Shown here one piece after another: positions 10,966 to 59,823 of a stretch of DNA of 64,000 nucleotides; position 1 is the stretch's first letter; each line of letters begins with the position of its first letter. The position numbers and the translations under genes are program-made. The notes beneath the pieces are model-generated. The model searched no databases. It was given only the letters and a program-made list of their open reading frames with translations, and was not told the DNA's origin. Where the stretch lies: positions 186,001 to 250,000 of IMG/VR virus record IMGVR_UViG_3300021137_000001; one strand, 5' to 3'.

Positions 10966-11006
10966 AAAACTTTAAACTAAATATAGTAATAGCTACAGGA
11001 TTACTA

Positions 11007-12168: not shown

Positions 12169-12480
12169 ATGAATGCAGTAAATCTTACAGTTGAAGTACA
12201 CTGTTTAAAGCCAAGCTGGGTCAATCACGAAAACAACAAATATCGCATATATGTCAATGATGATTTATTAACCGAACGCACATGGATATGGGAATTAAAT
12301 ACCTTAATCAATGAAAATATCTGGGTCATTATTCCCGCAAATAGTACTAATACTGTTAGACTCGAACAAATTCTACAAGATAAATCAGTAGCTCAATTCG
12401 CACTTCGTAATTTACAAGTTGCCGATGCGCCATTTACCTCAGAACAAATCAATGATCTAACCATAAGTTTTACATTGTAA
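12169..12480 (+). CDS. Hypothetical protein
   Basis: 103 aa, YRIYVNDDLLTERTW. Confidence 0.7.
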   Translation: MNAVNLTVEVHCLKPSWVNHENNKYRIYVNDDLLTERTWIWELNTLINENIWVIIPANSTNTVRLEQILQDKSVAQFALRNLQVADAPFTSEQINDLTISFTL

Positions 12481-12491
12481 TAAATACATAT

Positions 12492-12665
12492 ATGAAAATA
12501 AATGACATTATTCAACGACCAGACTTAACCGAAGATGCAACAGGCGGCGGTACAAGTGCCGGCGCAATTGCTACAATCCCAGGTGTTGGTACAGGTGCTA
12601 AAGTGGGCGCACTGTTCGGTGGCACTTATAAACAACCTAAAACTAAAAAGAGAAAAACGAAATGA
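12492..12665 (+). CDS. Small Gly-rich protein with basic tail (57 aa, not in the ORF track)
   Basis: Follows ATAAATA at 12480; MKINDIIQRPDLTE|DATGGGTSAGAIA...; stop overlaps the next ATG. Confidence 0.75.
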   Translation: MKINDIIQRPDLTEDATGGGTSAGAIATIPGVGTGAKVGALFGGTYKQPKTKKRKTK

Positions 12666-16137: not shown

Positions 16138-16809
16138 ATGCGAATACAAGATTTTAATCCAGTAATTAAAGAAGATAACGAAATGTCCGATGTTGTTACA
16201 GCACACGGGCTAGTGGGCAAATCATTGCATAATCCTACTGCACGTCAAGAATACTTTGATTATATGACACACTTGCGCAACAAGCATGGTAAAGAATATA
16301 GCACACGTGTACATCAAAAAGCAACGGCACTTGCTAAACCAGTAGAAGAAACAATTGTAAAAGTGGGCAGTCAATATGAACTTAAATCACACACTGGTAA
16401 GAACTTGGGCAAGTACCCAACTCGAGCTGGTGCTGAGAAACGTGAACAACAGGTTAATTATTTTAAGCACGTTAAAGAAGATGCGTGGACTGGTGATAAT
16501 CCAGCATGGAACAATGGCACAGATCAATGGCATAGTGCAGATGATGGATCTGGCGGTGGAGTTAGTGGTGGTGCGCCAGCAGCTCCATTAACTGGGGCAT
16601 TACCAATTGAAGAAGATTTTAATCCACAAGATGTTGTTAGTGTTGATGTTCCACTATTAATACGTTTACTTGAATATGCTCGTGAAGATGCAAAAACAGA
16701 CATGGATTTACATAATGTAACAGAACGTTTAATTGCCTTAAGTCAAGAAGGCAATACACTAACAATGCAAGATTATGACACAATTTGCAACACCAAGGAA
16801 ACTGATTAA
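16138..16809 (+). CDS. Modular hypothetical protein, putative head-internal
   Basis: Leader MRIQDF..IKE|D; junctions VEE|T, VKE|D, IEE|D; ATAAATA at 16103. Confidence 0.7.
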   Translation: MRIQDFNPVIKEDNEMSDVVTAHGLVGKSLHNPTARQEYFDYMTHLRNKHGKEYSTRVHQKATALAKPVEETIVKVGSQYELKSHTGKNLGKYPTRAGAEKREQQVNYFKHVKEDAWTGDNPAWNNGTDQWHSADDGSGGGVSGGAPAAPLTGALPIEEDFNPQDVVSVDVPLLIRLLEYAREDAKTDMDLHNVTERLIALSQEGNTLTMQDYDTICNTKETD

Positions 16810-19142
16810 TGGCATCATTACTGTATACATATATTATTAATACATCAGGACCGCGAGCATTTACTATGCCCGATGGTTTTAAAGATACCGCAGTACTTCA
16901 TTTATGGGGTGCAGGCGGTGGAGCAGGTTCAAATGCCGTAGGCGGTGGCGGTGGTTATTCCAGAACAACAGTAACAATACAAAAAGGTGACATAGTCGAA
17001 CTTGGAGTCGGCTTACCAGGTAGTCCAGCAACTGGAAACACTCCCGGCACAGGTGGCGGCAGTTCAATCGGTCTACGTTATAGTGGAGGTCCTGGAGGTC
17101 CCGGTAGTACAATATCTGGCGATGATAATATCGGCGGAGCAGGTGGTGGTGGTGGCGGCGCAACTGTTGTTATGGTTAATGGCATTGCGGTCGGAGTTGC
17201 CGGCGGCGGAGGCGGTGGGGGCGGTGGAAGTGGTTACCAAACAGGTGCGGCTGGATTGGCCGGTGGAGTATACACTGCATTAACATTAAACACACAAGGC
17301 GGTGCTGGCGCTGCTGCGTATGCAGCTGGAGGCGGTGGTGGTGGTGGCTATTTTGGCGGCGCAGCTGGTGCAGGCAAAGGTGACGATGTTGGTGGTGGCA
17401 ATGGCGGGTCTGGCGGTGAAAATTACGGCACAATTGCTATTATAGGGTCGGGAACAATTAGTGGTGGCGTAGGACAAACTTACGCACCAACAGCAAACTT
17501 TGGACACGCTGGTTACGGCGGTTATGCAGTAATTGAGTTTACCCGTAAATTCCAAATATACACAAAAGATTCAGGTACATGGCATCAAATATTAAATGCG
17601 TGGGTTAAAACACCTGCACATCAAATTCCAGCCACAATAGTACATCAACCAGAAACAGTATCATTTACTACTAATTCAACTTTTACAGTACCGGCCGGAG
17701 TAACTGCACTTACTGTAACTGCTATCGGTGGTGGAGGTGGTGGTGGAGGTGCAGATGGTAATGCAAGTGGCGGATATTACTATGATGAAGCCGGTGTATT
17801 AAAAGGTGGCTACCCGGGTGAGAAAGTGTCAGGTACTATCGCAGTCGCCCCTGGCCAAATATATACAATAACTCCGGGTAATGGTGGTGAAGGTGGACAA
17901 GGTAGAGCTAGTAGTGCAGTCGGTGGTGCAGCAGGTACTGGTTATTTTCCGGGTGGTAGAGGCGGATATGCTGGTGCATCAGGATCATCGGGAGCAGGTG
18001 GTGGCGGTGGCGCAGCAACAGTAATATTACTTGCTGGCAATCCGTTATTAGTAGCCGGTGGTGGCGGAGGCGCTGGTGGATCAGGCAATGGTGCCTATGG
18101 TGTTGCTACAATCGGTACATATACATCTGGAACAACTGGTGCACAAGGACAAGACAAATCAGGCGATGGTGGTGGAGGCGGTGGCGGAGGTGGCGGTCAC
18201 ACACAAGGCGGTTCTGGTGGACCAACACGTGGTGGCGACAGTGGCGGATATTCAGGTCAAACTGGTAAATCATTAGCACCATCAGGAACAACAGTAGGTG
18301 TTGGAACTAACGGTGGTTTATATGCAAGTGGCAACGGTGGACGTGGATCTGTCACTGTAACATACACATTACCAACTGAATATATTACTATTGCAGACGG
18401 TGGCTGGAAAGAAATTGAACAAGTATATGAAAAATATAACGGTGTATGGAATCCAGTATTAAGCATAGAAACAGTAAATGATAAACGTGGTGCACGTTAT
18501 ACTACACCTGGTACGTATGTATGGGTATGCCCTAGTGACATTGTTAGAGTTAAAGCAATGGTATACGGTGCTGGTGGTTCAGGTACTGGGGGTGCTGGTG
18601 GAGCAGGTGGATTTACAACTGATTATACAACAGTAACTCCAGGTGCGCATTATGCAGTGGTAGTCGGTGCTGGTGCAGAACCAACAGGCTCGGCAGCTGG
18701 TCAAGATAGTAGTTTTAATGTAACAGTAGTTGCCCATGGTGGAGCACACGGCGCGGCACAATCAGCTGGAACAGATGCTGGTGGTGCAGGTGGTATATCA
18801 GCAGGTGGAGATATAAATCTAACTGGGGTGGCTGGTACAGCAGGAAACGCTCTTTATTCATACTACTACTATTGGTGGGGTGGCTGGAATAGCTACTACG
18901 GTTGGGGAGGTTATAACTATTATAACTACAATGGTATCGGTAATTACGCCAACGGGTATTATGGCTATAATTATAACTACGGTTATAACAACTATGGTTG
19001 GGGCGGATGGTATGGCTGGGGATGGCCGTACTCTTATCAATCTGGTTATAACTATGGTACGCCAGGAGTTGGTTATGATGGAATCGGTGGTGGGGCAGTT
19101 ACTACTACAGGCGCACCGGGTGCAGTACTTATTGTGTACTAG
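16809..19142 (+). CDS. Glycine-rich virion, tail-fibre or adhesin-like protein
   Basis: Three Gly-rich domains each opening with a xGxGG poly-Gly run; Tyr/Trp/Asn/Gly-rich C-terminal insert. Confidence 0.7.
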   Translation: MASLLYTYIINTSGPRAFTMPDGFKDTAVLHLWGAGGGAGSNAVGGGGGYSRTTVTIQKGDIVELGVGLPGSPATGNTPGTGGGSSIGLRYSGGPGGPGSTISGDDNIGGAGGGGGGATVVMVNGIAVGVAGGGGGGGGGSGYQTGAAGLAGGVYTALTLNTQGGAGAAAYAAGGGGGGGYFGGAAGAGKGDDVGGGNGGSGGENYGTIAIIGSGTISGGVGQTYAPTANFGHAGYGGYAVIEFTRKFQIYTKDSGTWHQILNAWVKTPAHQIPATIVHQPETVSFTTNSTFTVPAGVTALTVTAIGGGGGGGGADGNASGGYYYDEAGVLKGGYPGEKVSGTIAVAPGQIYTITPGNGGEGGQGRASSAVGGAAGTGYFPGGRGGYAGASGSSGAGGGGGAATVILLAGNPLLVAGGGGGAGGSGNGAYGVATIGTYTSGTTGAQGQDKSGDGGGGGGGGGGHTQGGSGGPTRGGDSGGYSGQTGKSLAPSGTTVGVGTNGGLYASGNGGRGSVTVTYTLPTEYITIADGGWKEIEQVYEKYNGVWNPVLSIETVNDKRGARYTTPGTYVWVCPSDIVRVKAMVYGAGGSGTGGAGGAGGFTTDYTTVTPGAHYAVVVGAGAEPTGSAAGQDSSFNVTVVAHGGAHGAAQSAGTDAGGAGGISAGGDINLTGVAGTAGNALYSYYYYWWGGWNSYYGWGGYNYYNYNGIGNYANGYYGYNYNYGYNNYGWGGWYGWGWPYSYQSGYNYGTPGVGYDGIGGGAVTTTGAPGAVLIVY

Positions 19143-19180: not shown

Positions 19181-20005
19181 ATGAAAAGATTTCTAATAGC
19201 AATAGCATTAATCGCAGTAAGTTTTAACAGTTATGCATGGAATCAACGTGCGCCAGGTACAATACAACAATGTCAACAACATATTCCATATGGTGCCGAA
19301 TCATCAGCAATGCCATTACAACCAATATGCCGTCAAGCATATCTAGTTGAATACGATGTTGCAAATAAGATTCCAAACAATGTAAGTTGGACACTACAAC
19401 CACAAAATGCACTTGGTTGTGTTGCTCGTTCAAATGCATTTGCAGCAGATCAAAGTGTTCCGAATGGTGCATCACCTGCAGAGTATGCAGGTACAAACTA
19501 CGATAAAGGACATATGGCTCCAGATGGTGATCAATCGTGGGACCAACAAGTTGAATTTGAATCATTCTTAATGACTAACATGAATCCACAAGCAGGTTCG
19601 TTAAATCGTGGTATTTGGAAACTATTAGAAACATCATTTCGTGGCTGGGCATATCAATTAAACACACCATTTACAGCATACGCAGGTGCGTTATACAATG
19701 CACAAGATAAAACAATTGGTAAAGGCATACGGGTAAGTCATGCATATTATAAAATTGTAATCAATGATAAAACTGGTGAAGTAGCAGGTTGGTTATTTCC
19801 ACATGTTGCACCATATCCAAATCTTGGCAACGACTTAACTAAATTCCGCACACCAATTGCACAAATCGAACAACAAGCTGGTGTTAAGTTTGCATTTCCA
19901 GCAAATGCTAAAGAACTTGCTCCGGGACAAGAGTGGAAAGTTGACTTTGGTGCACTAACAAACCAAAAACGTAAGTTATGTGGTGCTAACGCAACAACTG
20001 ATTAA
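19181..20005 (+). CDS. Secreted DNA/RNA non-specific endonuclease (NucA/Serratia family)
   Basis: Signal peptide, YDKGHMAP, ESFLMTNMNPQ, LNRGIWKLLE. Confidence 0.9.
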   Translation: MKRFLIAIALIAVSFNSYAWNQRAPGTIQQCQQHIPYGAESSAMPLQPICRQAYLVEYDVANKIPNNVSWTLQPQNALGCVARSNAFAADQSVPNGASPAEYAGTNYDKGHMAPDGDQSWDQQVEFESFLMTNMNPQAGSLNRGIWKLLETSFRGWAYQLNTPFTAYAGALYNAQDKTIGKGIRVSHAYYKIVINDKTGEVAGWLFPHVAPYPNLGNDLTKFRTPIAQIEQQAGVKFAFPANAKELAPGQEWKVDFGALTNQKRKLCGANATTD

Positions 20006-20072: not shown

Positions 20073-20462
20073 ATGGTAGACACAACAACTGCACCACCAA
20101 CAACAGATACACGCCCGTGGGGATTTCATGCAATCATGGATTGTGCTAACTGCAATTCAGCAAAAATTACAGATTTATCTAATATTTCTGCATGGTTAGT
20201 AGATGTATTACAAAAAACTAACTTAACATCAGTAGGTACTGCAACAGTGGTTGCTACAGATGCTGGTTATACCGCAGTGCAAATACTTACAACTGGCACA
20301 ATTACAGCACAGTTTGTAGACACACACAATCAAGTTTATATCGATGTGTTTAGTAATACCGAATATAACCCAGTCGAACTTGAAACTTCAATCAAAACAT
20401 TTTTTGATGTTATTGATACAGACATCAAAAAGATATTAATTCCTCGTAACGCCACAGTATAA
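20073..20462 (+). CDS. S-adenosylmethionine decarboxylase (SpeD)-fold protein, apparently catalytically degenerate
   Basis: WGFHAIMDC..C, GYTAVQ, YIDVFS present, but the self-cleavage Ser, His and Cys appear replaced. Confidence 0.65.
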   Translation: MVDTTTAPPTTDTRPWGFHAIMDCANCNSAKITDLSNISAWLVDVLQKTNLTSVGTATVVATDAGYTAVQILTTGTITAQFVDTHNQVYIDVFSNTEYNPVELETSIKTFFDVIDTDIKKILIPRNATV

Positions 20463-20494
20463 ACTCATTGTAGTATTTTAAATAAATACTTAAT

Positions 20495-21859
20495 ATGAGA
20501 ATAATTGACCTATTAACCGAAGCCGTGAGCAGTGTAGTATACCACTACACTAATCTCGATGCCGCCGCAAAGATACTTACAACAGGGCAGTTTGCACTTA
20601 GCTCGACTCTTGGAAGTATAGAAGAAAAGTTTGCTCCGAAAGGTCTGCCATACTTTCTAAGTACAACACGTACAAGACGCGGAGGATATCACTCTAACGC
20701 AATCGGTGATGGTGCCGCAATGTTTAACTTAGATGGCAACTATTACAATCAGCGTTACAAAGGTGGCCCAATTGATTATTGGGGCGACAGACATAATGAC
20801 TATGGTCGTACCGCAGAAGCCGAGGATAGAATATTTAGTAAAGAACCAACAATGCCTGCTGGTGGCATTACATCAGTACATATATTTGTTAAGCCATTAC
20901 CGGTTGCAGCAGTACCGGGTTCATCAGTTGACATACGTGCCCGTGAATCGATATCTAGTTATGCCGCACGTGCTCGTACTGCATTGTTAGCTGCTAAGAA
21001 AGCCGGCATACCTGCATACTTGTACGAAGATAGACTAGGTTGGGTAAATCAAGACCCTACTGCACGTATAGCAATCACTGGTTCACGTGATACATTACGT
21101 GGACAAATTCCAATGTACAATCCAAGTCACCCACCAAGACAGTATATGGCTAAGTGGTTAGAGTTAATGTACAAAGATAGCACTAAAGCACTTAGCACAC
21201 AAAACTTTGGCGATTTACATTCGTTAATATACAATGATCCATATTGGCTTAAAGAGATGGTTACAAGTTTATCATCCGATTTAAGTAATGCTCGCAAACC
21301 ATCAGCTGGGGCAGATAGAGAAGTTGCTGTTAAAATTATTTCGTATATGAATCGACATGGCTTACATACAGTAACAGACTTTATTATGGCATTGCGTAAA
21401 AAGTGGACGATAATTAAAAACAAAGAGCAAGAAGCAAAGTATGATGCTGAACAAGCCGACTACGCAAAGTTTCAAGCAAAAGAAAAAGCAGCACAGCCAG
21501 AGTTAGCAGAGTCAACCAATCCTAAGTCAGCATCACCTGATGAAATTTTTGATTATATAGAAAGCATACACACTGGTCCGGGTTTACACGATACTAACGA
21601 TGATGAACTAAGTACAGAAGAATGGGTACATCAGTTTGATTCATTTGAATTACAACCAGTCAACTTATCAACACTTGCGTTAAAAGCAGGTTCAAACAAA
21701 CAAGCAAAAATAGATCAATACGCACAAAGTCAAGAAGAGTTCCCACCAATTGTAATAGACGGTTCAAGTGATTGGATTATTGATGGGTATCATCGTGCTA
21801 ATGCAGCCGCACAACGTGGCGACACAACAATAATGGCATACGTAGGAGTAGGAAGATGA
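20495..21859 (+). CDS. Two-module protein with C-terminal ParB/Srx-like domain
   Basis: Leader MRIIDLLTE|A; junction LAE|S; PPIVID..IIDGYHRANAA. Confidence 0.7.
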   Translation: MRIIDLLTEAVSSVVYHYTNLDAAAKILTTGQFALSSTLGSIEEKFAPKGLPYFLSTTRTRRGGYHSNAIGDGAAMFNLDGNYYNQRYKGGPIDYWGDRHNDYGRTAEAEDRIFSKEPTMPAGGITSVHIFVKPLPVAAVPGSSVDIRARESISSYAARARTALLAAKKAGIPAYLYEDRLGWVNQDPTARIAITGSRDTLRGQIPMYNPSHPPRQYMAKWLELMYKDSTKALSTQNFGDLHSLIYNDPYWLKEMVTSLSSDLSNARKPSAGADREVAVKIISYMNRHGLHTVTDFIMALRKKWTIIKNKEQEAKYDAEQADYAKFQAKEKAAQPELAESTNPKSASPDEIFDYIESIHTGPGLHDTNDDELSTEEWVHQFDSFELQPVNLSTLALKAGSNKQAKIDQYAQSQEEFPPIVIDGSSDWIIDGYHRANAAAQRGDTTIMAYVGVGR

Positions 21860-22593
21860 AAATAACAGAAGGTGGAAATGTATTTAAGTTAGCTGACGGT
21901 TCTCCTGCAACACAACGAATAAACAAAGCCGATGTATTGCCTACTGTACAATGGTTAGAACAACTAACTGGACTTAATTTAGTCGATAATATGCTTGGGT
22001 CTACTGGATACAAAGAAACAAGTGGTGATTTGGATCTTGCTGTTGACGGAAGTAAAATTAGTAAAGATGTACTTGTACAACAATTATTAAAGAAAGGCAT
22101 CGAGCCAACTGATATTAAAAAGACTGGCGATAGTGTACATTTAAAAACTCCAATCAATGGCGAAGGAAAGTTCGGATTTGTACAGACCGACTTTATGATA
22201 GGAGATCCAAACTTCCAACGTTTTAGCATGACAGGTAGCCCAGAAGGTAGTCCATTCAAAGGTATGCATCGTCATGTATTACTTGCTAGTATTGCCAAAG
22301 CACAAGGCATGAAATGGTCATACAAAAATGGCCTAATGGATAGAGCAACTAACGAAGTTATTTCAAAAGATCCATCTGAAATAGCACACAAATTATTTAA
22401 TGGTAGTGCGGCTGATTTAGCATCAGTTGAAACTATACTTGCTAAGATTAAAAATCGTCCCGACTACAATGCACTAGTAGCAGACGCAAAAGAAACACTA
22501 GGTAAAGAAAATGTACAATTGCCAGAAACACAACAAGCAACAGTAAGCGAAGGTTCGGCAGCATGGTTTAAAAACTGGAAGGCAGTGCTGTGA
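21856..22593 (+). CDS. Pol-beta superfamily nucleotidyltransferase-like protein
   Basis: LGSTG..SGDLDLAVD, VQTDFM; leader MKITE|GG. Confidence 0.7.
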   Translation: MKITEGGNVFKLADGSPATQRINKADVLPTVQWLEQLTGLNLVDNMLGSTGYKETSGDLDLAVDGSKISKDVLVQQLLKKGIEPTDIKKTGDSVHLKTPINGEGKFGFVQTDFMIGDPNFQRFSMTGSPEGSPFKGMHRHVLLASIAKAQGMKWSYKNGLMDRATNEVISKDPSEIAHKLFNGSAADLASVETILAKIKNRPDYNALVADAKETLGKENVQLPETQQATVSEGSAAWFKNWKAVL

Positions 22594-23045
22594 GAGCAAG
22601 AGAGTTTATTATAGAAGGAAAGTTTAATTGGAATGAGTATGCAAGTATTCCAATTAAAGATCGGATTACTATAATCGAATCATTGTTAACAAATAAAAAT
22701 CTACTAGAATCTAATGATATTGAGTATGCAGATTTTTTTCAAGAATTGATCAATTCATCAATTCACGCAGTCAACGGAAATTCGTATATAGTATGTGTAA
22801 TAGCATTAGTAAGTAATACCGTTATCTTAGTAGAACCACCTGTAACCGGCGAGCTCGTTGACACCCTAAACGATGAATATAAAATCAAAACAAGTACTGG
22901 TATTAAAGATTTTCCAGACAATTATCACTGGAGGGAGATGTTAGCTCATACTTTCTTTTTTAATAATCGGGATGAATATAATAAATTTAGAACAGTAATA
23001 AAATTAAGATTTAATAAAGATTTACCGGATACAGGTATAAAATAA
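22590..23045 (+). CDS. Hypothetical protein, paralog of 24806-25309
   Basis: GTG start, leader MRAREFIIE|G; C-terminal FFFN..EYNKFRTVIKLRFNKDLP. Confidence 0.75.
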   Translation: MRAREFIIEGKFNWNEYASIPIKDRITIIESLLTNKNLLESNDIEYADFFQELINSSIHAVNGNSYIVCVIALVSNTVILVEPPVTGELVDTLNDEYKIKTSTGIKDFPDNYHWREMLAHTFFFNNRDEYNKFRTVIKLRFNKDLPDTGIK

Positions 23046-23047
23046 TT

Positions 23048-23878
23048 ATGAGAGCGATCGAATTCATTATCGAGGATTATAAAACTGCAAAAGTAGCTTT
23101 TGTCAATCAGGGTATAAATCCAGATGACGTAACACAAGCGTTAACTGATTATAAATCATTAGTAACTAGAAATCAATTTAAAGATCAAGAAAAGAATATT
23201 GATTGGTGGGTAAAAAATAAACCGTGGGCAGAATTTAAGCAGGCTGTTGAAAAGCAAATTATTACTCCATCTACTACGCAAATTAAACGAGCAACACTAA
23301 GCGGTAATGCAATCGATTTATCCAATGAGTTAGGCTTACAAGGCAAATGGCAAATTGTTGTCCCACTTGATATTGATGCTAGTTGTCATTATGGTAAAAA
23401 CACAGATTGGTGTACTGCTAAACGCACACCGTTGTATGGTTCGTATATTGCAAAAGGCACTATTTTAATATATTGCCAATATCTAAAAACTAATAAAAAA
23501 TGGGCAATTAGTGTAATTGGTAATAGAGCACAAGCATACACAGCAAATGATTATCCAATGGAAGATGGGCAATTTGATAAAGCAACTGGTCTTAATATTG
23601 ATACTATTGTATCTGCTGCAAAGAAACATTTAGGTGAGATTTTATCCGCCAGAGACAAATTAATAAAAATTGACCCGTGGGTTGCATATCCGTATGTGAG
23701 AGATATACTTAAACAACGTAGTCCAGAATTAGAAAAAGTAGTTATGCAAGATCCAATGGCAGCGGCAAGATATGCTCGTGATGTTATTAACGGTGAATGG
23801 CCCGAAGCTGAACAACTAATTAGTTCTGATCCAACCGCTGCTGCATTTTATAATAAGAATACAGGACGTAGCGAATGA
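23048..23878 (+). CDS. Hypothetical protein with CxYGxxTxWCT domain and C-terminal helical repeats
   Basis: Leader MRAIEFIIE|D; IVVP..ASCHYGKNTDWCTA; DP..A..YARDVI.G.WPEAE repeats. Confidence 0.75.
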   Translation: MRAIEFIIEDYKTAKVAFVNQGINPDDVTQALTDYKSLVTRNQFKDQEKNIDWWVKNKPWAEFKQAVEKQIITPSTTQIKRATLSGNAIDLSNELGLQGKWQIVVPLDIDASCHYGKNTDWCTAKRTPLYGSYIAKGTILIYCQYLKTNKKWAISVIGNRAQAYTANDYPMEDGQFDKATGLNIDTIVSAAKKHLGEILSARDKLIKIDPWVAYPYVRDILKQRSPELEKVVMQDPMAAARYARDVINGEWPEAEQLISSDPTAAAFYNKNTGRSE

Positions 23879-24816
23879 GAGCAAGAGAATTTATCTTAGA
23901 GGGTGGATGGGCAAGTACTTTAACACAAGGTACACACATTACACCTGCGTTAGTTGATGTTGTAGTACAATCAATGCCTGCGTTACAACAAGCACTAAAT
24001 GCCTTCTTAAAAACTAAAGACCTGGCACCTGTTAAGATTGGCACACCTGTTGGTAGTACAACATACTACAAGAGAGATCTTGCGCAAAATCCAACTCGTG
24101 AGTACGGCGATATTGATGTTAACTTCTTTGTGCCTCGTTTACCCAATATGTCAGACAATGCAAATGAACAAACATACAGTGCCGCAATTAAAGAGTTTTG
24201 CGATAGTAATCCAAACTATTCAACTAACAACGGTACGAATGTTATAATTAGAGTGGGCGATCAATATGTACAAGTTGACTTTGTTACTTCGTACTATGAA
24301 AATGAACAGTGGAGTCGTGCATTAGGTCCAGAATACAATGTCAAGGGTGTACTAAGCGCAAGTTTATATTCATCATTGGCAGAAGCATTAAATCTTAGTT
24401 TTGGCGGACGTGGTGTACAAGTTAAATTACAAAATGGCGTTCCGGTTAGTTTTAGACAAACTAAAGATACAGAGCTTAAAACCGTAACAAACAATCCCGA
24501 CACTTGGGCAATTGATATTGCTAAGTTTCTTGGCGCAAAAACTATTAGTCCACGTTTAGCCAAATATCCGGGCATGGGCGACGAAATAAAGACACTAAAC
24601 ACTATTAACAGTATTGTTGGCATTGCCGAAAGTTTAAACAAACCTGAGTTAATAGAACAGGTGAAAGCAATCTACATAAGTAAAATAAGCAAGGCAGTTA
24701 ATAGTAGTAAGTTTGACAAGGCGGCTACTCCAGAAGCAATTAAAAAAGCCGAAGATACTAAAGCATTATTGACTAGAGAAGCACAACGTATATTAGGACA
24801 GTTCGATGCGATTTAA
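23875..24816 (+). CDS. Pol-beta superfamily nucleotidyltransferase-like protein
   Basis: VGST...YGDIDV, VQVDFV; leader MRAREFILE|GG. Confidence 0.7.
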   Translation: MRAREFILEGGWASTLTQGTHITPALVDVVVQSMPALQQALNAFLKTKDLAPVKIGTPVGSTTYYKRDLAQNPTREYGDIDVNFFVPRLPNMSDNANEQTYSAAIKEFCDSNPNYSTNNGTNVIIRVGDQYVQVDFVTSYYENEQWSRALGPEYNVKGVLSASLYSSLAEALNLSFGGRGVQVKLQNGVPVSFRQTKDTELKTVTNNPDTWAIDIAKFLGAKTISPRLAKYPGMGDEIKTLNTINSIVGIAESLNKPELIEQVKAIYISKISKAVNSSKFDKAATPEAIKKAEDTKALLTREAQRILGQFDAI

Positions 24817-25320
24817 AGAGATATTAAACGAAGTTACAGTGTGTTGGGATGGGATATCAATATCATCAATGAGCGATAAACTGAAATTTTTTGAACAATA
24901 TTGCTCAAAAAAGTCATATCTTAGAGAATCAATTGATACATCCGATGTAGAAATATTTGAATCATTATCACATTATGCCACATCTCCTGTTGTAAATAAT
25001 TGGTATATCGGTGCGTTATTAATGTTATTAGAGAATAATAATGTTATTCCATTCAATGACGCACAAATTTTAAAATACACAGGCACAAGTACAGGAGCAG
25101 ACGGTATTATCATTATACATTTTCTTAAAGAAGATGGTACCAAAGGAACATGGCCGGATTCGGTCCTCTCAGAGAAAAGTTATTATAAATCATTTCTATT
25201 CGATTCAACCGCACAGTATGATATATTTAGATCAGCAGTAGCATTAAGATATAGTAAACCATTGCCAAAAATTGAGTCGGACAAATTAGGAAAGCAAGAT
25301 GCGATTTAAAGAGATATTAA
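24792..25320 (+). repeat. Direct repeat covering SD, start and leader codons (24792-24827 and 25285-25320)
   Basis: Identical 23-mer GATGCGATTTAAAGAGATATTAA at 24805 and 25298, each preceded by ATTAGGAxAG. Confidence 0.9.
24806..25309 (+). CDS. Hypothetical protein, paralog of 22590-23045
   Basis: Leader MRFKEILNE|V; FLFD..QYDIFRSAVALRYSKPLP. Confidence 0.75.
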   Translation: MRFKEILNEVTVCWDGISISSMSDKLKFFEQYCSKKSYLRESIDTSDVEIFESLSHYATSPVVNNWYIGALLMLLENNNVIPFNDAQILKYTGTSTGADGIIIIHFLKEDGTKGTWPDSVLSEKSYYKSFLFDSTAQYDIFRSAVALRYSKPLPKIESDKLGKQDAI

Positions 25321-26633
25321 GAGAGTATAGTAGAGAGAAAACTGCTAACGTGTTTGGCAAGAAACTTATTGCGGCACTACTAGCAGAAAAGGGATTGAAC
25401 TATGGTGGAGCGGGGTTTCATCAAATCTTATCTGACATTAGATTTAGAATACAACAAAAGTTAAAGATTGGCTCACCGCTTGATGCCGAACAAGAAGACT
25501 TAACTGCTAAACAAATACTACACGCCATCGAACAAGGCGATCCAACACCAAATAAAGAGTATGTACAGTGGCTGGCAAAATGCTATGCAAATGAAGGCGT
25601 AAAGCTGGAAGATATCGTCAGTAAAGGGGCAGATTGGCTCAAAACTTACGCTCAATTGAAGGTTAAACGTCTACTACCACCAAATGTCACAAACATAATG
25701 AATTTGAAGTTTGCACAGTTGCCAGACGTTGTATTCGACGAAGAGCTTGTTAGCAAACTACAAGCGGCGGAAGATAAGACAGCAGACAAAGGTAAGGCAA
25801 CTACAGTATTTGAGAATGGCGCAGTACGTATTATTGTACCACAAGATGAAACTTCAGCTTGCTACTATGGACAAGGTACACGTTGGTGTACTGCGGCACG
25901 TGCAAACAATATGTATGATAACTATGCTCGTGATGGCGACTTATATATAATGTTGCCAAAACAACCTAAGTATGATGGCGAGAAGTATCAATTGCATTTT
26001 GCTAGTGGACAGTTCATGGACGAGGGTGATAGTCCAGTGAGTGATATGATTGCGTTATTAACTGGTCGCTTTGGCGATGATGTCATGACGTTTTTCTTTA
26101 ATAAAGAGCCAATGATTAAACAATGGATTGTAGTTACTCCAGCAGAAATATTACAACCATTAATAGATCAAATTGCTGACATCGCTAGCGACTACATAAA
26201 CGATAAAATAAGTGATTGGGAAATGGAAGATGACTATTACTACAACGAGCTACGTGAAAAGGGCTATGTTGACGAAGATGGTGATGTTGACTGGACCAGA
26301 GTTGAAAAAGATGGCATGTCTTGGTTAGAAACTAATGATGAGGCGCAGGAATGGCTTAGTAGAGCACAAGATGCTGTTAGACCAAGTATTGATAGATTAC
26401 GCGATGCGGCACAAGAGTGGGCTGAAGACAATGGTGAGGAATGTACGCTACATCAGTTAGATAGTTTAGTGGCCAGTATTGTTATAGAAGAATTTACATC
26501 ACGTCGTGGCAATACTGAAGATGGTGGGCTATCTGAGTGGATGGAAAAACATATTCAAATACGTGCATCAACTCCATCACAACAAGCTGCGGGCGAGCCG
26601 CAGTGGAAAGCTGAATATACTAAAGGGCAATAA
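25299..26633 (+). CDS. Hypothetical protein with CxYGxxTxWCT domain, paralog of 23048-23878
   Basis: Leader MRFKEILRE|Y; IIVP..SACYYGQGTRWCTA; acidic C-terminus. Confidence 0.75.
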   Translation: MRFKEILREYSREKTANVFGKKLIAALLAEKGLNYGGAGFHQILSDIRFRIQQKLKIGSPLDAEQEDLTAKQILHAIEQGDPTPNKEYVQWLAKCYANEGVKLEDIVSKGADWLKTYAQLKVKRLLPPNVTNIMNLKFAQLPDVVFDEELVSKLQAAEDKTADKGKATTVFENGAVRIIVPQDETSACYYGQGTRWCTAARANNMYDNYARDGDLYIMLPKQPKYDGEKYQLHFASGQFMDEGDSPVSDMIALLTGRFGDDVMTFFFNKEPMIKQWIVVTPAEILQPLIDQIADIASDYINDKISDWEMEDDYYYNELREKGYVDEDGDVDWTRVEKDGMSWLETNDEAQEWLSRAQDAVRPSIDRLRDAAQEWAEDNGEECTLHQLDSLVASIVIEEFTSRRGNTEDGGLSEWMEKHIQIRASTPSQQAAGEPQWKAEYTKGQ

Positions 26634-27742
26634 TGAAATTATCAGACGTACATCGTAAAACAAACAGAGTTGACTGTACATTTGACGGCAGTTGGACAGC
26701 ACCATCTACGATTGTAGTTAAAGCAGTGCTTAAACAAGAACACAAAGATTGGACTAACGAGTGGGAAAAAGAAGTTATGCGTGGAGAAGCATTATTAAAT
26801 GTTTCATCACATACACTTTATGTTAGTCGCATCGACGCTCGACCATCGGGACAAGGCTTCGGTGGTGAAATGCTTAAATGTATTATTGAACATGCACGTG
26901 CGCATAAGATTCCCCGTATTGAAACATACGTTGAAAACAACAATGCTGATTCACGTAACTTATTTAGAAAAGCGGGCTTTGAAGAAATGCCCGGAACAGA
27001 TGGCGGAAGATGGCGTCTGGACTTAACAACTAACGAAGCACGTATACCTAAAGATGTTGTAAAGAATAATGTTGCTTATCACAATGAACTTAATCCAGCG
27101 GCATGGGATGGTGATCATTTAAATCCAGAAGTAAAAGATCGTTTACTAGAAATTGCTGAACGTTTTGTTAGTTATTTAGAAATCCCAGACTTTAAAGTAT
27201 TAGACATTGTACTAACTGGTAGTATGTCTAACTATAACTGGACTAAGTTTAGTGACTTTGACCTACACGTAATTACAAATTATAGTGATTTAAAATGCGA
27301 TAACATTGTAGCAGAGTTTTATCACGCTAAGAAAAAGATATGGAATGATGATCACGATATTACTATCTATGGTTATGATACTGAGTTGTATGTTGAAGAT
27401 TCTAAAAACCCACCAGTTAGTGAAGGTGTGTATAGTATACTAAATGACGAATGGGTTAAGACTCCTACATATAGTCCGCCAAGTATTAACAACAATGCTG
27501 TTAATGCCAAGGTTAGAGATTTAATTAATCAAATCGATACTGCTATTAGTACAGCAGATGACCCAGCAGACATTAAACGTATATCAGACAAACTTGCTAA
27601 AATGCGCAGAGCAGGCTTAGATGAAGCCGGTGAGTTTAGTACAGAGAACTTGGCGTTTAAAATATTACGTAACATGAAATACATTGATAGATTACACAAA
27701 GCATATCATCAGCAACAAGATGATGAACTTAGTTTGAAATAA
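26633..27742 (+). CDS. GNAT acetyltransferase fused to a nucleotidyltransferase
   Basis: SGQGFGGEML, NADSRNLFRKAGF (GNAT); LTGSMSNYNW..SDFDLH (NTase); junction TNE|A. Confidence 0.8.
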   Translation: MKLSDVHRKTNRVDCTFDGSWTAPSTIVVKAVLKQEHKDWTNEWEKEVMRGEALLNVSSHTLYVSRIDARPSGQGFGGEMLKCIIEHARAHKIPRIETYVENNNADSRNLFRKAGFEEMPGTDGGRWRLDLTTNEARIPKDVVKNNVAYHNELNPAAWDGDHLNPEVKDRLLEIAERFVSYLEIPDFKVLDIVLTGSMSNYNWTKFSDFDLHVITNYSDLKCDNIVAEFYHAKKKIWNDDHDITIYGYDTELYVEDSKNPPVSEGVYSILNDEWVKTPTYSPPSINNNAVNAKVRDLINQIDTAISTADDPADIKRISDKLAKMRRAGLDEAGEFSTENLAFKILRNMKYIDRLHKAYHQQQDDELSLK

Positions 27743-27747
27743 AATTA

Positions 27748-27834
27748 TCACCTTAGGACCGGTAATTCGTTACCGCAGGTGGGGCGGCTACTGCCCTGGG
27801 GAAACAATTCGCTACTGCGTACCCTAAAAGTAGC
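27748..27834 (+). ncRNA. Candidate structured ncRNA with rRNA-complementary segments
   Basis: GC-rich island in an AT-rich intergenic gap; CACCU/AGGUG stem, CGGUAA-UUCG-UUACCG hairpin, GGGC/GCCC hairpin, possible GCUACU/AGUAGC pseudoknot. Confidence 0.65.
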
Positions 27835-27849
27835 AACTTGATTTCTGTA

Positions 27850-27856
27850 ATAAATA
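27850..27856 (+). promoter_or_regulatory. T4-late-like (T)ATAAATA promoter motif, representative copy
   Basis: ATAAATA sits shortly upstream of starts at 2238, 9441, 12480, 16103, 19155, 20482, 27850, 55928 and 57429, and on the minus strand before all five endonuclease genes. Confidence 0.65.
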
Positions 27857-27877
27857 CACTATAATAAGAGAATCCTG

Positions 27878-30800
27878 ATGCGCTTTAAAGAAATCAAAAA
27901 ACTATTTGAAACTACACAACTTGATGAAGTTTCAATGAGTCCAACTAACTTACAAAAATTCCTTAATAGTCCAGAAGCTATTGGTATGTTAATTGGTATC
28001 GAGTTTGAAATGGCTGTGCCTAATGTAGACGGTAGCGATGATGAAGATTCGAACTACGAGCCAGATTATAGTTACAATGAAAGCTGTACTGACATTAGCG
28101 AGATTGTAAACTTCTTTCAGCATGGTGACTTTGCTAGCATGGGCCGAAGTGATGCAAATCGTGTACGTGATGATTTGTTTGAAGAATATATGAATTGGTC
28201 GTATGATGCCGCAGAAGATTATGTAAACGATCACGATGATGACTTAACCAGTAACATCCGTAGTCGCTTATTTGACAATGAAGTTGATCGTGATGATACC
28301 GCAGAAGAAGCACACACACGCTGGGTAGAGGAAAATCCAGACGGCGACACAGCATCAGAAGAAGCCAGCGAAGAAATACGTAATCTAACATTGCAAATGA
28401 TGGAAGATAAATTAGATGCTATGATGGAAGATATTGAAAGTAGTGAATATCAAAATGCGTACGATGAAGCAAAACAAGAAATGGAATATGACTTTCGTAA
28501 TAGTGGCGACGGAGACATGGAAGCATGGCTAAGTGATATAGGCGTCAACGATATGCAAGATGCTGCTGGACAATGGGGACTTGATTGGCCGCACATGGAA
28601 GACACTAACTATAACAATGGTGGTGCTTCTATAGAAACTGTAGCAGACGAGTTTGCCGAATGGATGGGATTAAGTAATGTAAACAGTTCAAGTAAATATC
28701 ACGGTGCTAGAAGAGATGGCAAATCTTGGTGTATTGAACCGGATGGCAGTATCGATCACGATGAAAACGAAGCTGGGTTAGAGTTTATTAGTCCACCACT
28801 ACCATTGAAAGATGGCTTAGAGCAAATGACTAAAATCATTGCGTGGGCAAATGATAAAGGTTGTAGAACTAATAGTTCAACTGGTCTACACATGAACATT
28901 AGTGTGCCTGATTATAATTTCGACCATTTAGACTTTGTTAAACTTGCATTGTTTATGGGCGATGAACATATATTAGAACAGTTTGGCCGTACTTACAATA
29001 ATTTTTGTAAGAGTGCGTTAAAAATTGTTAAAGAAAAAATTGATAAAGAAGGTGTTGCTGGGCCATTACTACAAGCAATGCGTGACCATTTGAACGTTGC
29101 CGCAAGTAAAGCAGTACACAATGGTACAACACAAAAGTATACAAGTATCAACACACAAACTGGTTATGTGGAATTTCGCGGCCCGGGTGGTGATTATTTA
29201 AATCAAGACATTACGCAACTAATTTCAACAGCATTACGTTTAGCACAAAGTTTACGTATAGCTACAGATCCGTTAGCACATAAACAAGAGTATGCTAAAA
29301 AATTATACAAACTTGTAGTACCAACCGATAAAGATACAGACGATGATAACAGTGTTGCTATGTTTACTCGTTATGCAATGGGTCAGATTAAGAAAGATGA
29401 CTTGTTAAACAGTTTACGTCAGGCGCAATCAACTCGTAAAGCTAAAAAATTCCCACATGGTCCGAAACGTGAATGGACAGTTGTACGTAAGAGCAATCCA
29501 GGATACAAAGTATCATTCAACGCATCATCTGCAGCAGAAGCATTACAGTTAGCTAAGAATCAAATTGGTGGTTGGCAAGGTGTAGCAGATGAACACTTTA
29601 AAGTAACAGCAGATGCTAGTGGTGATTCTGCATACAATAAAGCAAGAGAGGAACATTATCTATCTACAATGAATCCGGTGTGGCAGAAGTTTATTCGTGA
29701 TATCGCAACTATAGATACTGATAGATTGAAAAAACGAAAAGCTGAATTTGAAACGAAATCTGAAAGTACACCGTTAGAAGAGTGGGAAAAAATAGCACTT
29801 ACTAAAATCAATAATGAATTAGCAACACGTAAAGACGATGTTGCAGCTACTGGTGCAATAGATGATTTAGAAGAATTACCACAACAACATCGCGAGTATG
29901 CGCAAGATATACAAAATAAATCAGAAGATACATTAAACCGTATTAAAGCCGAGATAGAAGCTGGCGACTTTAGAAATGCGTTAACAAACATACAAGCATC
30001 AATTTTCCTCGGCGTTGTTGTAAATGAACTTGCTCGTCGTGCTGGATTAACTGCTGATATGGCTGACTTAGATGGCTTTGTTAATACGCTTGGACAAACA
30101 AGCACGTGGCAGTTGTATAATCCTGCAACAGACGAAGTATTAGCTACATACACTGGATTAACACAAGGGCAAGCAATAGACAGACGTTCAGCAATGCGTT
30201 CGAATCAAGGCAATGAAAATATTGAAATGCGCAACTTAGGTAGTGCAGAACAATCAACAGCGCAAGCCAATGCTACTCCCTCAACACTATGGGATAACTG
30301 GATACGTACACTTCCAACTAGAAATACAGACTCTATTAATAGCTTTAGAGATCAAATACGTGGCGGTGAGCACAATAATACATTGCCATCAGAACATGAA
30401 AGAGATGTTGTTATTATTGCTATTGATGATGAACTACGTAGCAGAATGGCACGAGGCGAAGGTTCGGGCACAAGAACTTATACAATATACGATGGTACAG
30501 GCAGAATTGTAAATACTATTCGCTCAACATCAGTGGCAAGGGCATTAGATGACTTTGGTGAGAATAATGATATCGATACAACTCATTACACCGCTCGCGA
30601 ACTTGGAGTTACATATAATAATTATGGCGATGCGCAAGCGGCTGCGGATACACAAAATTCAGCACAACGTCTGGGACCGGGTCAATCAACATACAGTGTT
30701 GAACATATTCCAACCGGACAAGTTACTAGTCAGATAGGCAACGATGCTGCAGATGCTATACAACGTGTTGCTAGACTAACTGGCAGCACTCCTAATAATT

Positions 30801-31075
30801 TTAGAATTGCACAAGCAGCACCAGCCAACAACTTAAAACGATATAGAGTGGGCAATCATACATACGGTCGTGAAATTATACATGCAGCAAATCGTGAAGA
30901 AGCTATTCGTTTGTTTGCTTTCAACAATAACATATCAGTTGATGACGTTACTTCGGGACCGAGCTTTGTAGCAGATTTAGTAGATGACGAACAGTCACAA
31001 GATGCAGCCGCACAGTTAGCAACTCAAGTAGCAGAATCACTCAACCGTATGCGTAAACTAGCAGGGCTGAAGTAA
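27878..31075 (+). CDS. Putative amidoligase (COOH-NH2 ligase type 2) with long C-terminal extension
   Basis: IGIEFE, IEPDGSI, LEFISPP, TNSSTGLHMNIS, KYTSIN, VEFRGPGG; leader MRFKEIKKLFE..LDE|V; ends ESLNRMRKLAGLK. Confidence 0.8.
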   Translation: MRFKEIKKLFETTQLDEVSMSPTNLQKFLNSPEAIGMLIGIEFEMAVPNVDGSDDEDSNYEPDYSYNESCTDISEIVNFFQHGDFASMGRSDANRVRDDLFEEYMNWSYDAAEDYVNDHDDDLTSNIRSRLFDNEVDRDDTAEEAHTRWVEENPDGDTASEEASEEIRNLTLQMMEDKLDAMMEDIESSEYQNAYDEAKQEMEYDFRNSGDGDMEAWLSDIGVNDMQDAAGQWGLDWPHMEDTNYNNGGASIETVADEFAEWMGLSNVNSSSKYHGARRDGKSWCIEPDGSIDHDENEAGLEFISPPLPLKDGLEQMTKIIAWANDKGCRTNSSTGLHMNISVPDYNFDHLDFVKLALFMGDEHILEQFGRTYNNFCKSALKIVKEKIDKEGVAGPLLQAMRDHLNVAASKAVHNGTTQKYTSINTQTGYVEFRGPGGDYLNQDITQLISTALRLAQSLRIATDPLAHKQEYAKKLYKLVVPTDKDTDDDNSVAMFTRYAMGQIKKDDLLNSLRQAQSTRKAKKFPHGPKREWTVVRKSNPGYKVSFNASSAAEALQLAKNQIGGWQGVADEHFKVTADASGDSAYNKAREEHYLSTMNPVWQKFIRDIATIDTDRLKKRKAEFETKSESTPLEEWEKIALTKINNELATRKDDVAATGAIDDLEELPQQHREYAQDIQNKSEDTLNRIKAEIEAGDFRNALTNIQASIFLGVVVNELARRAGLTADMADLDGFVNTLGQTSTWQLYNPATDEVLATYTGLTQGQAIDRRSAMRSNQGNENIEMRNLGSAEQSTAQANATPSTLWDNWIRTLPTRNTDSINSFRDQIRGGEHNNTLPSEHERDVVIIAIDDELRSRMARGEGSGTRTYTIYDGTGRIVNTIRSTSVARALDDFGENNDIDTTHYTARELGVTYNNYGDAQAAADTQNSAQRLGPGQSTYSVEHIPTGQVTSQIGNDAADAIQRVARLTGSTPNNFRIAQAAPANNLKRYRVGNHTYGREIIHAANREEAIRLFAFNNNISVDDVTSGPSFVADLVDDEQSQDAAAQLATQVAESLNRMRKLAGLK

Positions 31076-31716
31076 TGAACATATTTGAAATGTTCGACGA
31101 GCCAAAGCAACTAACGCTGATTGATGCGTTACGTGACTTTTTACCTATCGCTATTGCATACTTAGAGTTAGATCACATTCCTAAAATTAAGTTAGTTAAA
31201 TCATTAGACGATACAACATTTGGGCATTTCAATAGCGAAGAACAAGTAATATATGCTGTAGTTGCTAATCGTAACCCAGTTGATATTTTACGTACTATTG
31301 CACACGAAATGACACACTACAAGCAAGGACAGGAACATCAACTTACTAACGACTCTGGTGAAACAGGTAGCACAGTTGAAGACGAAGCAAACGCAGAAGG
31401 TGGTGTTATTATGCGTGAGTTCAATGAGCAATTCCCACAATACTTACAATCTAGTTCAGTACAGTTAGCAGAAAGTGTTAAGTATGAAATTAAAAGTACA
31501 AAAGAAAATGGGCAACTTGAATTCTTCGGTACTACTGTAGACTTTCGCGGGTCAGCAATGAATAGAGCAATTAACGCATTAGATAGAACTAGCCGTCCAG
31601 TACAAGTATCTACTATAGAATACAGCAGTGAAAAGAAACGTTTTGTACCTATTAAAACAGTAATTATTAATCCGGGCGAGAATGTTAAGACTAAAATACT
31701 AAGTCTAGATGACTAA
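31075..31716 (+). CDS. Zincin-like metallopeptidase (HExxH) plus a C-terminal module
   Basis: LRTIAHEMTHYKQ..EDEANA; junction LAE|S. Confidence 0.75.
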   Translation: MNIFEMFDEPKQLTLIDALRDFLPIAIAYLELDHIPKIKLVKSLDDTTFGHFNSEEQVIYAVVANRNPVDILRTIAHEMTHYKQGQEHQLTNDSGETGSTVEDEANAEGGVIMREFNEQFPQYLQSSSVQLAESVKYEIKSTKENGQLEFFGTTVDFRGSAMNRAINALDRTSRPVQVSTIEYSSEKKRFVPIKTVIINPGENVKTKILSLDD

Positions 31717-31719
31717 CTC

Positions 31720-32043
31720 ATGAGAGCAACTGAATTTATAATCGAAACAAAAGTCGGCACGTTACATATCAACGGGTTAATTATTGATGTTGATGATCAT
31801 TCATTTGAACGTACAGCAGGGCGCAGAGTAAATACTGCAATGATTGACAGAGTTGTGCGCAGACTAGTTAACATACAAGATCAAATAATCAAAATAGAAG
31901 CTGGTCAGAAGTTTTGGGTTTATAGTCAGGCATTTGATATAGGACTTGGCTTAAGAAAACAATCAGATTCAAATCGTATATTACTAAAAACTGTAGTAGG
32001 TGATCGCCCATGGGATAGTGATATTCCAGTCTTAGAACTATAA
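31720..32043 (+). CDS. Hypothetical protein with CTS-like leader
   Basis: MRATEFIIE|T. Confidence 0.7.
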   Translation: MRATEFIIETKVGTLHINGLIIDVDDHSFERTAGRRVNTAMIDRVVRRLVNIQDQIIKIEAGQKFWVYSQAFDIGLGLRKQSDSNRILLKTVVGDRPWDSDIPVLEL

Positions 32044-59798: not shown

Positions 59799-59823
59799 AT
59801 AATAGGGGCTTAGGTCCCTATTA
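59799..59823. terminator. Probable bidirectional terminator hairpin
   Basis: AATAGGGGC-TTAG-GTCCCTATT between convergent genes. Confidence 0.65.

Follow-up and report, generated by a model that had tools for sequence, protein, structure and literature searches.

Leader-tagged, probably packaged enzymes in a shuffled gene locus of an uncultured T4-headed jumbo phage

The 64,000-nucleotide stretch analyzed here (the window) spans bases 186001-250000 of the virus record IMGVR_UViG_3300021137_000001, which is 329,321 bp long and has direct terminal repeats; the window contains seven consecutive genes whose order, A-B-C-A'-B'-C'-A'', raises the question of how such a periodic arrangement originated and what its products do. 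An earlier note, made from the sequence alone, had proposed an old duplication of a functional triad, composed of a nucleotidyltransferase (NTase, A), a partner (B) and a protein with a Cys-containing domain (C). The seven open reading frames are indeed found in that order, all of them (7/7) on the + strand between 21856 and 27742, with stops and starts that overlap or nearly abut; a duplicated three-part machine was not supported, and the genes probably encode proteins that are injected together with the DNA. They belong to a locus of eleven genes (20495-32043), at least nine of which carry the same short N-terminal leader or a close variant of it. The best explanation, to which we assign a probability of about 0.6, is that this is a hyperplastic internal-protein locus, whose leader-tagged enzymes would be packaged in the phage head, trimmed and ejected, and in which the leader would also be the site of recombination.

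Seven genes start with M-R-x-x-[ED]-[FIL]-[IL]-x-E, namely those at 20495 (454 aa) and 31720 together with B, C, A', B' and C'. A search of the 105,487-aa proteome for M[RK]xx[EDQ][FILM][ILVTAK]xE gave 11 occurrences, each of them at the extreme N-terminus (11/11), and seven of these lie within 20495-32043. When the window proteins were mapped onto 64 related loci from IMG/VR (designated by L numbers), their 761 proteins contained the same motif in 81 cases within residues 1-20 and in 8 cases at other positions; the consensus in these loci, M-R-A-[KR]-E-F-[IL]-x-E (nine residues), is present on many unrelated kinds of protein, and the leader pattern was found in at least 597 places in IMG/VR. 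Every leader in the window has I or L at P3 and E at P1. The DNA upstream of the leader genes is not conserved and the codons differ at 57 of 105 identical leader residues, thus selection acts on the peptide; the residual DNA identity of the leaders is sufficient for recombination breakpoints. No account of this leader, or of arrays like these in the jumbo phage group concerned, was found in the literature searched. The features of the locus are listed below, in window coordinates; a slash marks the proposed cleavage point.

20481-20489, + strand: late-promoter-like motif AATAAATAC, 5 nt before the first leader gene (20495)
20495-21859, + strand: 454-aa protein, leader MRIIDLLTE, C-terminal DGYHR (ParB-like by motif only); its stop overlaps the start of A
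21856-22593, + strand: A, predicted minimal family-X-polymerase-like nucleotidyltransferase, 245 aa, start MKITE/GG; AlphaFold2 (AF2) model and fold matches
22590-23045, + strand: B, 151 aa, leader MRAREFIIE; part of the B+C cassette
22591-22618, + strand: 28-nt leader-coding direct repeat (D1), left boundary of the B+C cassette, 86% identical to 23876-23903
23048-23878, + strand: C, 276 aa, leader MRAIEFIIE, WCTA core
23875-24816, + strand: A', 313 aa, distant homologue of A, full leader MRAREFILE/GGW
23876-23903, + strand: 28-nt leader-coding direct repeat, D1 partner, right boundary of the B+C cassette
24792-24827, + strand: 36-nt direct repeat (D6; ribosome-binding region and leader codons), left boundary of the B' cassette, 89% identical to 25285-25320
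24806-25309, + strand: B', 167 aa, paralogue of B, leader MRFKEILNE; single-gene cassette of 493 nt
25285-25320, + strand: 36-nt direct repeat, D6 partner, right boundary of the B' cassette
25299-26633, + strand: C', 444 aa, leader MRFKEILRE, WCTA core
26633-27742, + strand: A'', 369 aa, GNAT (residues ~60-120) fused to a Pol-beta-type NTase (~140-369)
27849-27857, + strand: late-promoter-like motif AATAAATAC(ACTA), 20 nt before the amidoligase gene, nearly identical to the portal motif
27878-31075, + strand: Amidoligase_2-domain protein, 1065 aa, leader variant MRFKEIKKLFE (PF12224, E 9e-15)
31075-31716, + strand: 213-aa protein, second-class leader MNIFEMFDE, like that of the gp67-like prohead core protein of this genome (MNLLEMFNDD)
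31720-32043, + strand: 107-aa protein, leader MRATEFIIE; closes the series of leader genes ahead of the DNA polymerase B module

The leader resembles the capsid-targeting sequence (CTS) of T4, MKTYQEFIAE (PMC8442874). The CTS is a 10-residue tag, enough to load proteins into the prohead, in which residues 4 and 7 matter in targeting and residues 8 and 10 in processing; the gp21 protease removes it by cutting after L/I-x-E (PMC9026906). It is the sole common part of the diverse set of T-even internal proteins (PMC3012670), of which more than 30 variants exist, encoded in highly variable loci, injected into the host and endowed with defensive or adaptive functions (PMC2839356). The likeness to T4 IPI, IPII and IPIII extends to several levels: an N-terminal tag of about 10 residues with an E-F-I-x-E core, ending in the gp21 site L/I-x-E; unrelated mature parts; clustered loci whose content varies among close relatives; and a head built by a T4-type protease and capsid protein. 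Compared with the CTS, the leader is one residue shorter and starts with M-R-A, and it marks a locus of eleven genes, for which packaging, as well as cleavage, ejection and targets, is what we infer.

The record contains a T4-type head module in the T4 gene order (portal, gp67-like and gp68-like core proteins, protease, scaffold and gp23-type capsid protein). The Pfam matches identify a Peptidase_S77 prohead protease (PF03420, E 5e-28) at positions 320468-321109 of the record and a Gp23-type capsid protein (PF07068, E 1e-83) at 322244-323419; the two prohead core proteins are 74 and 279 aa long. The prohead core proteins of the genome start with MNLLEMF and MNKYEQLIE, and EST35_0150 of Pseudomonas phage PA5oct, encoded between portal and protease, starts with MKINDIITE.

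According to the proposed mechanism, the leader would act like the T4 CTS and bring each protein into the assembling prohead core, where the gp21-type prohead protease would then cut it after the glutamate of L/I-x-E; once mature, the enzymes would remain in the head until their ejection with the DNA and act first in the infected cell. The cargo would comprise A and A' as minimal Pol-X-like NTases, A'' as a GNAT-NTase, the WCTA proteins C and C', B and B', the 454-aa protein and the giant amidoligase. With the same codons at every gene start, homologous recombination between leaders could insert, delete and reorder genes, and it would have produced the apparent A-B-C-A'-B'-C' periodicity. Support for the leader glutamate as the cut point comes from the A homologues of Atu_ph07, Phosso and L074, which start directly at MGG, that is, where A (MKITE/GG) and A' (MRAREFILE/GG) would start after cleavage.

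A large packaged enzyme is known in T4: Alt, an ADP-ribosyltransferase carried in the head, loses its propeptides by the action of gp21, is injected and acts at once (PMC9026906), as proposed here for the enzymes of the locus. No ADP-ribosyltransferase domain was identified in the window, where the enzymes are NTases, a GNAT and an amidoligase. The ejection (E) and inner-body proteins of phiKZ/SPN3US-type giant phages and the Dar proteins of P1 are also packaged in the head via propeptides, cut after Glu by a gp21-related protease and delivered to the host (PMC9026906). They differ, however, in having S/A-x-E sites and long propeptides with no short conserved N-terminal tag, and they belong to other heads and gene sets.

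Virion proteomics in cultured relatives is consistent with packaging. The gp numbers of Atu_ph07 were mapped from gp70 (primase/helicase) via gene order and molecular weight, the corresponding locus (L071) ending at about gp55. In this phage the virions yielded 10 unique peptides of the A homologue, gp65 (36.8% coverage), and gp63 and a neighboring array of leader-variant proteins (gp55-63 by mapping) were detected as well; gp66, which contains a ligase-type KxDG motif, was undetected (PMC6102473 Table S5). On the basis of electrospray ionization tandem mass spectrometry (ESI-MS/MS), the PA5oct homologue of C', EST35_0205 (30% identity, E 2e-17), carries the annotation of structural protein, and it sits within a cluster of structural proteins annotated in the same way. 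As a separate observation, gp56-61 of Atu_ph07 (L071:9673-14296; gp55 lies past the locus end) are tandem paralogues of ~255 aa (~30 kDa) that start with M-[RK]-W-x-Q-L-[TIN]-E and contain a YRG motif; judging from this motif, the array may be ADP-ribosyltransferase-like.

The timing of expression was approached through upstream motifs. Upstream of genes, the strongest enrichment among 8-mers is that of ATAAATAC and its neighbors; the genome contains 46 copies of ATAAATA[CG], and 36 of them fall within 90 nt upstream of a start codon and in the sense orientation. The late promoter of T4 is TATAAATA, and ATAAATA[CG] resembles it. The portal gene is preceded by the same motif (TATAAATACACTA), and nearly the same motif lies ahead of the operon-first leader genes 20495 and 27878 and of gene 12492; by analogy with T4, this suggests that the locus is transcribed late, together with the head genes. 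Exact TATAAATA is not enriched in the window, and a scan of the region for sigma-70 promoters and terminators gave results no better than shuffles. Often, only 3-6 nt separate the end of ATAAATA[CG] from the ATG; this is the case in nine genes, among them 20495 and 12492 (with the motif at, e.g., 20481-20489 and 12479-12487), whose late mRNAs would then be leaderless or nearly so.

These data bear on a different reading of the leader, namely that it is a shared module for translation initiation or recombination, or a localization or turnover signal, on cytoplasmic accessory proteins that act in the producing cell. Such a role would agree with the behavior of T4-type hyperplastic regions, which shuffle accessory ORFans by means of short repeated cassettes (PMC2839356), and with the fact that the leader repeats do act as recombination breakpoints, as described below; furthermore, packaging in this phage rests on inference. 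Conservation at the peptide, and not at the DNA, level speaks against it, however, as do the protease site L/I-x-E at the end of the motif, which mirrors the T4 CTS, the related N-termini on the prohead core proteins, the presence of homologues among the virion proteins of two cultured relatives and the late-promoter-like motifs ahead of the operons. We therefore consider it doubtful that the leader has only such a cytoplasmic role.

Several observations nevertheless weigh against a packaged and processed cargo. The virion detections come from distant phages, not from this one, and include no mapping of N-termini; moreover, the Atu_ph07 preparation was purified only with polyethylene glycol and included some replication proteins (PMC6102473). 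Since gp65 of Atu_ph07 has no leader and yet is virion-associated, the leader is not strictly required. A'' of the window lacks any leader, and the variant found in its family, MRAKDL.K, has no terminal Glu. EGGN is found also internally in fused A homologues, so that the "E/GG" junction could be a domain feature and not a cleavage site. The exact leader, searched as a DNA pattern, was absent from PA5oct, Vibrio phage 2.275.O and Atu_ph07, and the single doubtful match in Phosso, on the reverse strand and with the start M-S-W-D, is not a leader; these four lineages use other N-terminal variants. The promoter assignment is by analogy only. Finally, T4 internal proteins are small and basic, whereas the cargo proteins here, which include recognizable enzymes, have masses of 12-119 kDa and isoelectric points of 4.7-8.2, most of them being acidic to neutral; being small and basic, however, is not required of all packaged T4 proteins, as exemplified by Alt (PMC9026906).

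A broader claim, which we hold tentatively and at slightly worse than even odds, is that the M-R-A-x-E-F-I-x-E leader is a portable tag for capsid loading and protease release, as well as a site of cassette exchange, and that it marks a large and unrecognized repertoire of ejected enzymes in uncultured T4-headed jumbo phages. This repertoire would include minimal Pol-X-like polymerases, GNATs, amidoligases and superoxide dismutase. One protein with a Fe/Mn superoxide dismutase domain (Sod_Fe_C) and the leader MRAREFITE is encoded in the homologous locus of a related contig (L078:13132-13665) and is a possible packaged superoxide dismutase. If the leader is a capsid-targeting tag, the proteins that an entire group of uncultured giant phages injects, which are the first to meet host defenses, could be predicted from sequence alone; the T4 internal-protein paradigm would be widened from small inhibitors to a shuffled enzyme toolbox; and a natural short tag would be available for loading foreign proteins into large phage heads.

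How the A-B-C-A'-B'-C' order arose can be followed in the relationships among the genes and in related loci. B and B' are homologous over their full length (BLASTP E 8e-11, 23% identity), including the C-terminal F.F..Y..FR....L...K.LP, so that the motif that had been noticed in both reflects true homology. The same holds for C and C' (BLASTP E 1e-8), limited to a core of 44 residues that includes VP....C.YG..T.WCTA. The claimed likeness of A and A' is weak by BLASTP (E 0.019) and becomes clear only when profiles built from relatives are compared (hhalign, 88.5% probability, E 2.7e-6, in the VQxDF...KG region); both families keep GS, GDxD and VQxD, and their domain starts with GG. Profile comparison revealed no similarity between A and A''; thus A'' is not a third copy of A, and it consists of a GNAT fused to a different NTase. 

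In relatives where A and A' are 92-94% identical to those of the window, A abuts A' and A' abuts C', while B, C and B' are absent. DNA alignment with one of these loci, L005, showed that segments 21856-22618 and 23876-24827 of the window are collinear with one unbroken stretch of L005, and that 24792-24827 and 25285-25376 likewise match an unbroken stretch; a single L005 copy aligns to both 28-nt repeats, and a single L005 site to both 36-nt repeats. Because the flanking segments are collinear with single stretches, the window differs from L005 by two indels: the first, of 1,285 nt, contains B and C and is flanked by the 28-nt direct repeat (22591-22618 and 23876-23903), and the second, of 493 nt, contains B' and is flanked by the 36-nt direct repeat (24792-24827 and 25285-25320). 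The periodicity is therefore the outcome of two cassette events bounded by leader repeats and not of a duplicated triad, which indicates that an apparent tandem duplication can stem from cassette exchange between repeated gene starts.

The ancient duplication of a triad whose members function together as a single machine, with RNA, protein or nucleotide signals of the host as its target, is quite improbable in the light of these findings, even if the A-B-C-A'-B'-C' order is real, B/B' and C/C' are homologous, and a stand-alone B-type gene adjoins a C-type gene in 4/4 places (B-C and B'-C' in the window, C'-B in L047 and L078). This recurrent adjacency may reflect shared ancestry; in L074, B is a domain within a 645-aa protein. 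The breakpoints of the indels fall within leader repeats, the divergence is very unequal among the A/A', B/B' and C/C' pairs, A'' is not homologous to A, and the B-C order varies among genomes. The families also occur independently of each other, the outcome that the earlier note had named as speaking against its triad: A comprises at least 2,161 protein clusters, none of them named or assigned to Pfam, and was found in 54 IMG/VR loci, many of which have none of the other families, whereas B consists of 6 clusters among 5.8 billion proteins. Other relatives show the orders A-A''-C', A-A'-A''-C', A-A''-A', A-C'-A'' and A-C'-B. A prediction of the A+B complex gave a score of 0.00, which argues neither for nor against binding.

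A, A' and A'' all carry signatures of the Pol-beta superfamily, which bears out their identification as nucleotidyltransferases, and for A this is backed by the fold. The AF2 model of A has a pLDDT of 88; in a Foldseek search of the PDB the top 50 matches were all Pol lambda, beta, mu or PolX (E 5e-5, TM 0.5). In the VIA alignment the nine highest-ranking matches all belong to Pol X (Z 7.5-9.6 over 156-176 residues), the best matches being Pol beta, TdT, Thermus PolX, Pol lambda, African swine fever virus (ASFV) Pol X and Pol mu, with Z 9.6 over 164 aa for Pol beta and Z 8.4 over 156/176 aa for ASFV Pol X. With TUTases, CD-NTases, OAS and CCA enzymes, VIA aligned only the palm of ~90 residues, and CD-NTases and OAS scored Z 5.9 or less. 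G48, D58, D60 and D112 are invariant in 22 sequences of A, and position 49 is Ser, or Thr in five; in A', G60, S61, G78, D79, D81, Q133 and D135 are invariant in 7 sequences. The match to a palm and thumb fold, the GS motif and the three conserved carboxylates, the latter two being shared with family-X polymerases, indicate that A is, on its modeled structure, a minimal family-X-polymerase-like enzyme. Its scope is that of ASFV Pol X, which likewise consists of palm and thumb only, without the 8-kDa (deoxyribose-phosphate lyase) and fingers/helix-hairpin-helix domains; unlike family X, A has a helical region added at the C-terminus and an N-terminal GGN that is invariant. At the sequence level no link of A or A' to Pol X was found in Pfam, NCBIfam or PHROG, profile searches of the PDB gave nothing relevant, and tblastn of A' against cultured phages returned no match. 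The model would provide a first structural identity for an abundant phage family, of at least 2,161 clusters, that has no Pfam or PHROG model.

The presence of three proteins with NTase signatures might also suggest a phage-borne nucleotide-signaling or toxin-antitoxin system, of the CD-NTase/CBASS, MNT-HEPN or aminoglycoside-NTase type, and the annotation of one A'' homologue, from a cyanophage record, reads aminoglycoside nucleotidyltransferase. However, PADLOC gave nothing significant in nine proteins (its sole row was a match of 0.071 for B), Pfam and NCBIfam scans found no HEPN or effector partner, and A fits the palm and thumb of family X (Z 8.4-9.6), in contrast to the palm-only matches of CD-NTases and OAS. 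A system of this kind is thus highly improbable, and the link to nucleotide signaling that had been raised for the cluster was not borne out, since PADLOC and the fold comparison revealed no CD-NTase, CBASS or MNT signature; a host-directed role of the NTase cluster is plausible.

In Atu_ph07 and Phosso the A homologue adjoins a gene with the KxDG ligase-type motif, and other A homologues are fused behind a HIGH-motif NTase, both of which are hints at nucleic-acid end chemistry. With low confidence, A and A' may perform gap filling or end tailing on nucleic-acid ends, possibly those of the incoming genome. The A domain was also observed within proteins of 600-870 aa in more distant phages (L057, L059, L062, L044 and L065; at 8001-87xx), and some of these large proteins have an N-terminal nucleotidyltransferase with GRFQPP (HIGH-type). 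A CTP_transf_like protein is encoded at 10944-12167 of the window, and in L074 such a gene is found two genes after the A homologue.

The description of A'' as a GNAT-NTase holds, although not as a third copy of A. The GNAT domain exceeds the Pfam cut-offs (PF00583, 26.9 bits, cut-off 20.7; PF13302, 28 bits, cut-off 25.4; residues 72-118), whereas the NTase scores 18.4-19.6 bits with NTP_transf_2, under the cut-off of 21; 7/11 family members match this model, with a best E of 7e-5, and A'' matches phrog_36119 with E 4e-52. G57, S58, D69, D71, E116 and D117 are invariant in the NTase family. The NTases of relatives are separate proteins that begin with the leader variant MRA[KR]D[FL].K[GN]N; in the window, the GNAT is fused exactly at the position that the leader would occupy; L078 encodes a stand-alone leader-tagged GNAT that is 40% identical to the one in A''. 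Cassettes also fuse with each other. Homologues of A'' (L033:8732-9916, L055:9869-11041, L028, L032 and L039) have C-terminal extensions that differ among relatives, which suggests domain shuffling atop gene shuffling; one extension contains an EGWHR motif resembling DGYHR at the C-terminus of the 454-aa protein, for which no Pfam match was found.

C matches phrog_28193 (E 1e-33) and gp435 of Salicola phage SCTP-2 (29% identity, E 2e-23), and its Atlas neighbors are unnamed viral clusters, some with DUF4116 or LRV repeats. In an alignment of 14 sequences of the C' family, C197 is invariant and C188, H233, D241 and D244 are nearly invariant; a Cys197-His233-Asp241/244 triad may be read from these conserved columns. 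The AF2 model of C' (pLDDT 81) gave no fold match in the PDB with Foldseek, and a GNAT-like acyltransferase was discarded, the best VIA match (Z 5.6) being within noise. A faint hint for the core of C and C' is PcfJ-like (PF14284), a family of phages and conjugative elements: BFVD Foldseek gave E 3e-3 to 0.25 and one of the 14 family members matches at E 0.06, all these matches being below significance. B and B' had no match in Pfam, NCBIfam, PHROG or sequence searches of the PDB, and no significant one in PADLOC; the Atlas search with B gave no usable match.

As to the phage itself, its capsid protein is 62-67% identical to the counterparts in Vibrio phage 2.275.O, Sinorhizobium phage Phosso, Pseudomonas phage PA5oct and E. 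coli phage A4. Since Atu_ph07 is close to the Rak2-like jumbo phages (PMC6102473), the phage can be placed near this assemblage; megablast of the region against cultured phages gave no match.

Leader-like N-termini were observed also outside the main locus, at 70098-71409 and 75363-76429 of the record and at 12492-12665 and 16138-16809 of the window, with the starts MKINEILAES (twice), MKLFEIKKE, MKLSEM, MRLREF, MKINDIIQ and MRIQDF; these genes suggest a second leader cluster in the genome and an upstream extension of the main locus. In most relatives the amidoligase gene is kept at the distal end of the latter, and an Endonuclease_NS gene (E 1.5e-35; 19181-20005, + strand) just upstream of it. 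The product is a DNA/RNA non-specific endonuclease with an apparent N-terminal signal peptide (MKRFLIAIALIAVSFNSYA), and a secreted nuclease is unusual for a phage. Between the nuclease and the first leader gene lies an AdoMet_dc-like (S-adenosylmethionine decarboxylase-like) gene without leader (E 2e-12; 20073-20462, + strand), which is present in many relatives.

Further upstream, the window encodes a ClpB/Hsp104-type double-AAA chaperone (7107-9419, + strand; AAA_2 E 1e-54, ClpB_D2-small) and a 777-aa Gly_rich_2 protein (16809-19142, + strand; E 9e-9) of extreme glycine content with a Tyr/Trp/Gly-rich tail, the latter kept in relatives and highly variable. Downstream, the flow of + strand genes is broken by four minus-strand genes of ~190-250 aa (50832-51413, 53338-54015, 56213-56959 and 59821-60477), which have Tyr-rich, mutually similar N-termini and look, by appearance only, like homing-endonuclease-type insertions; the motif ATAAATAG lies ahead of two of the four.

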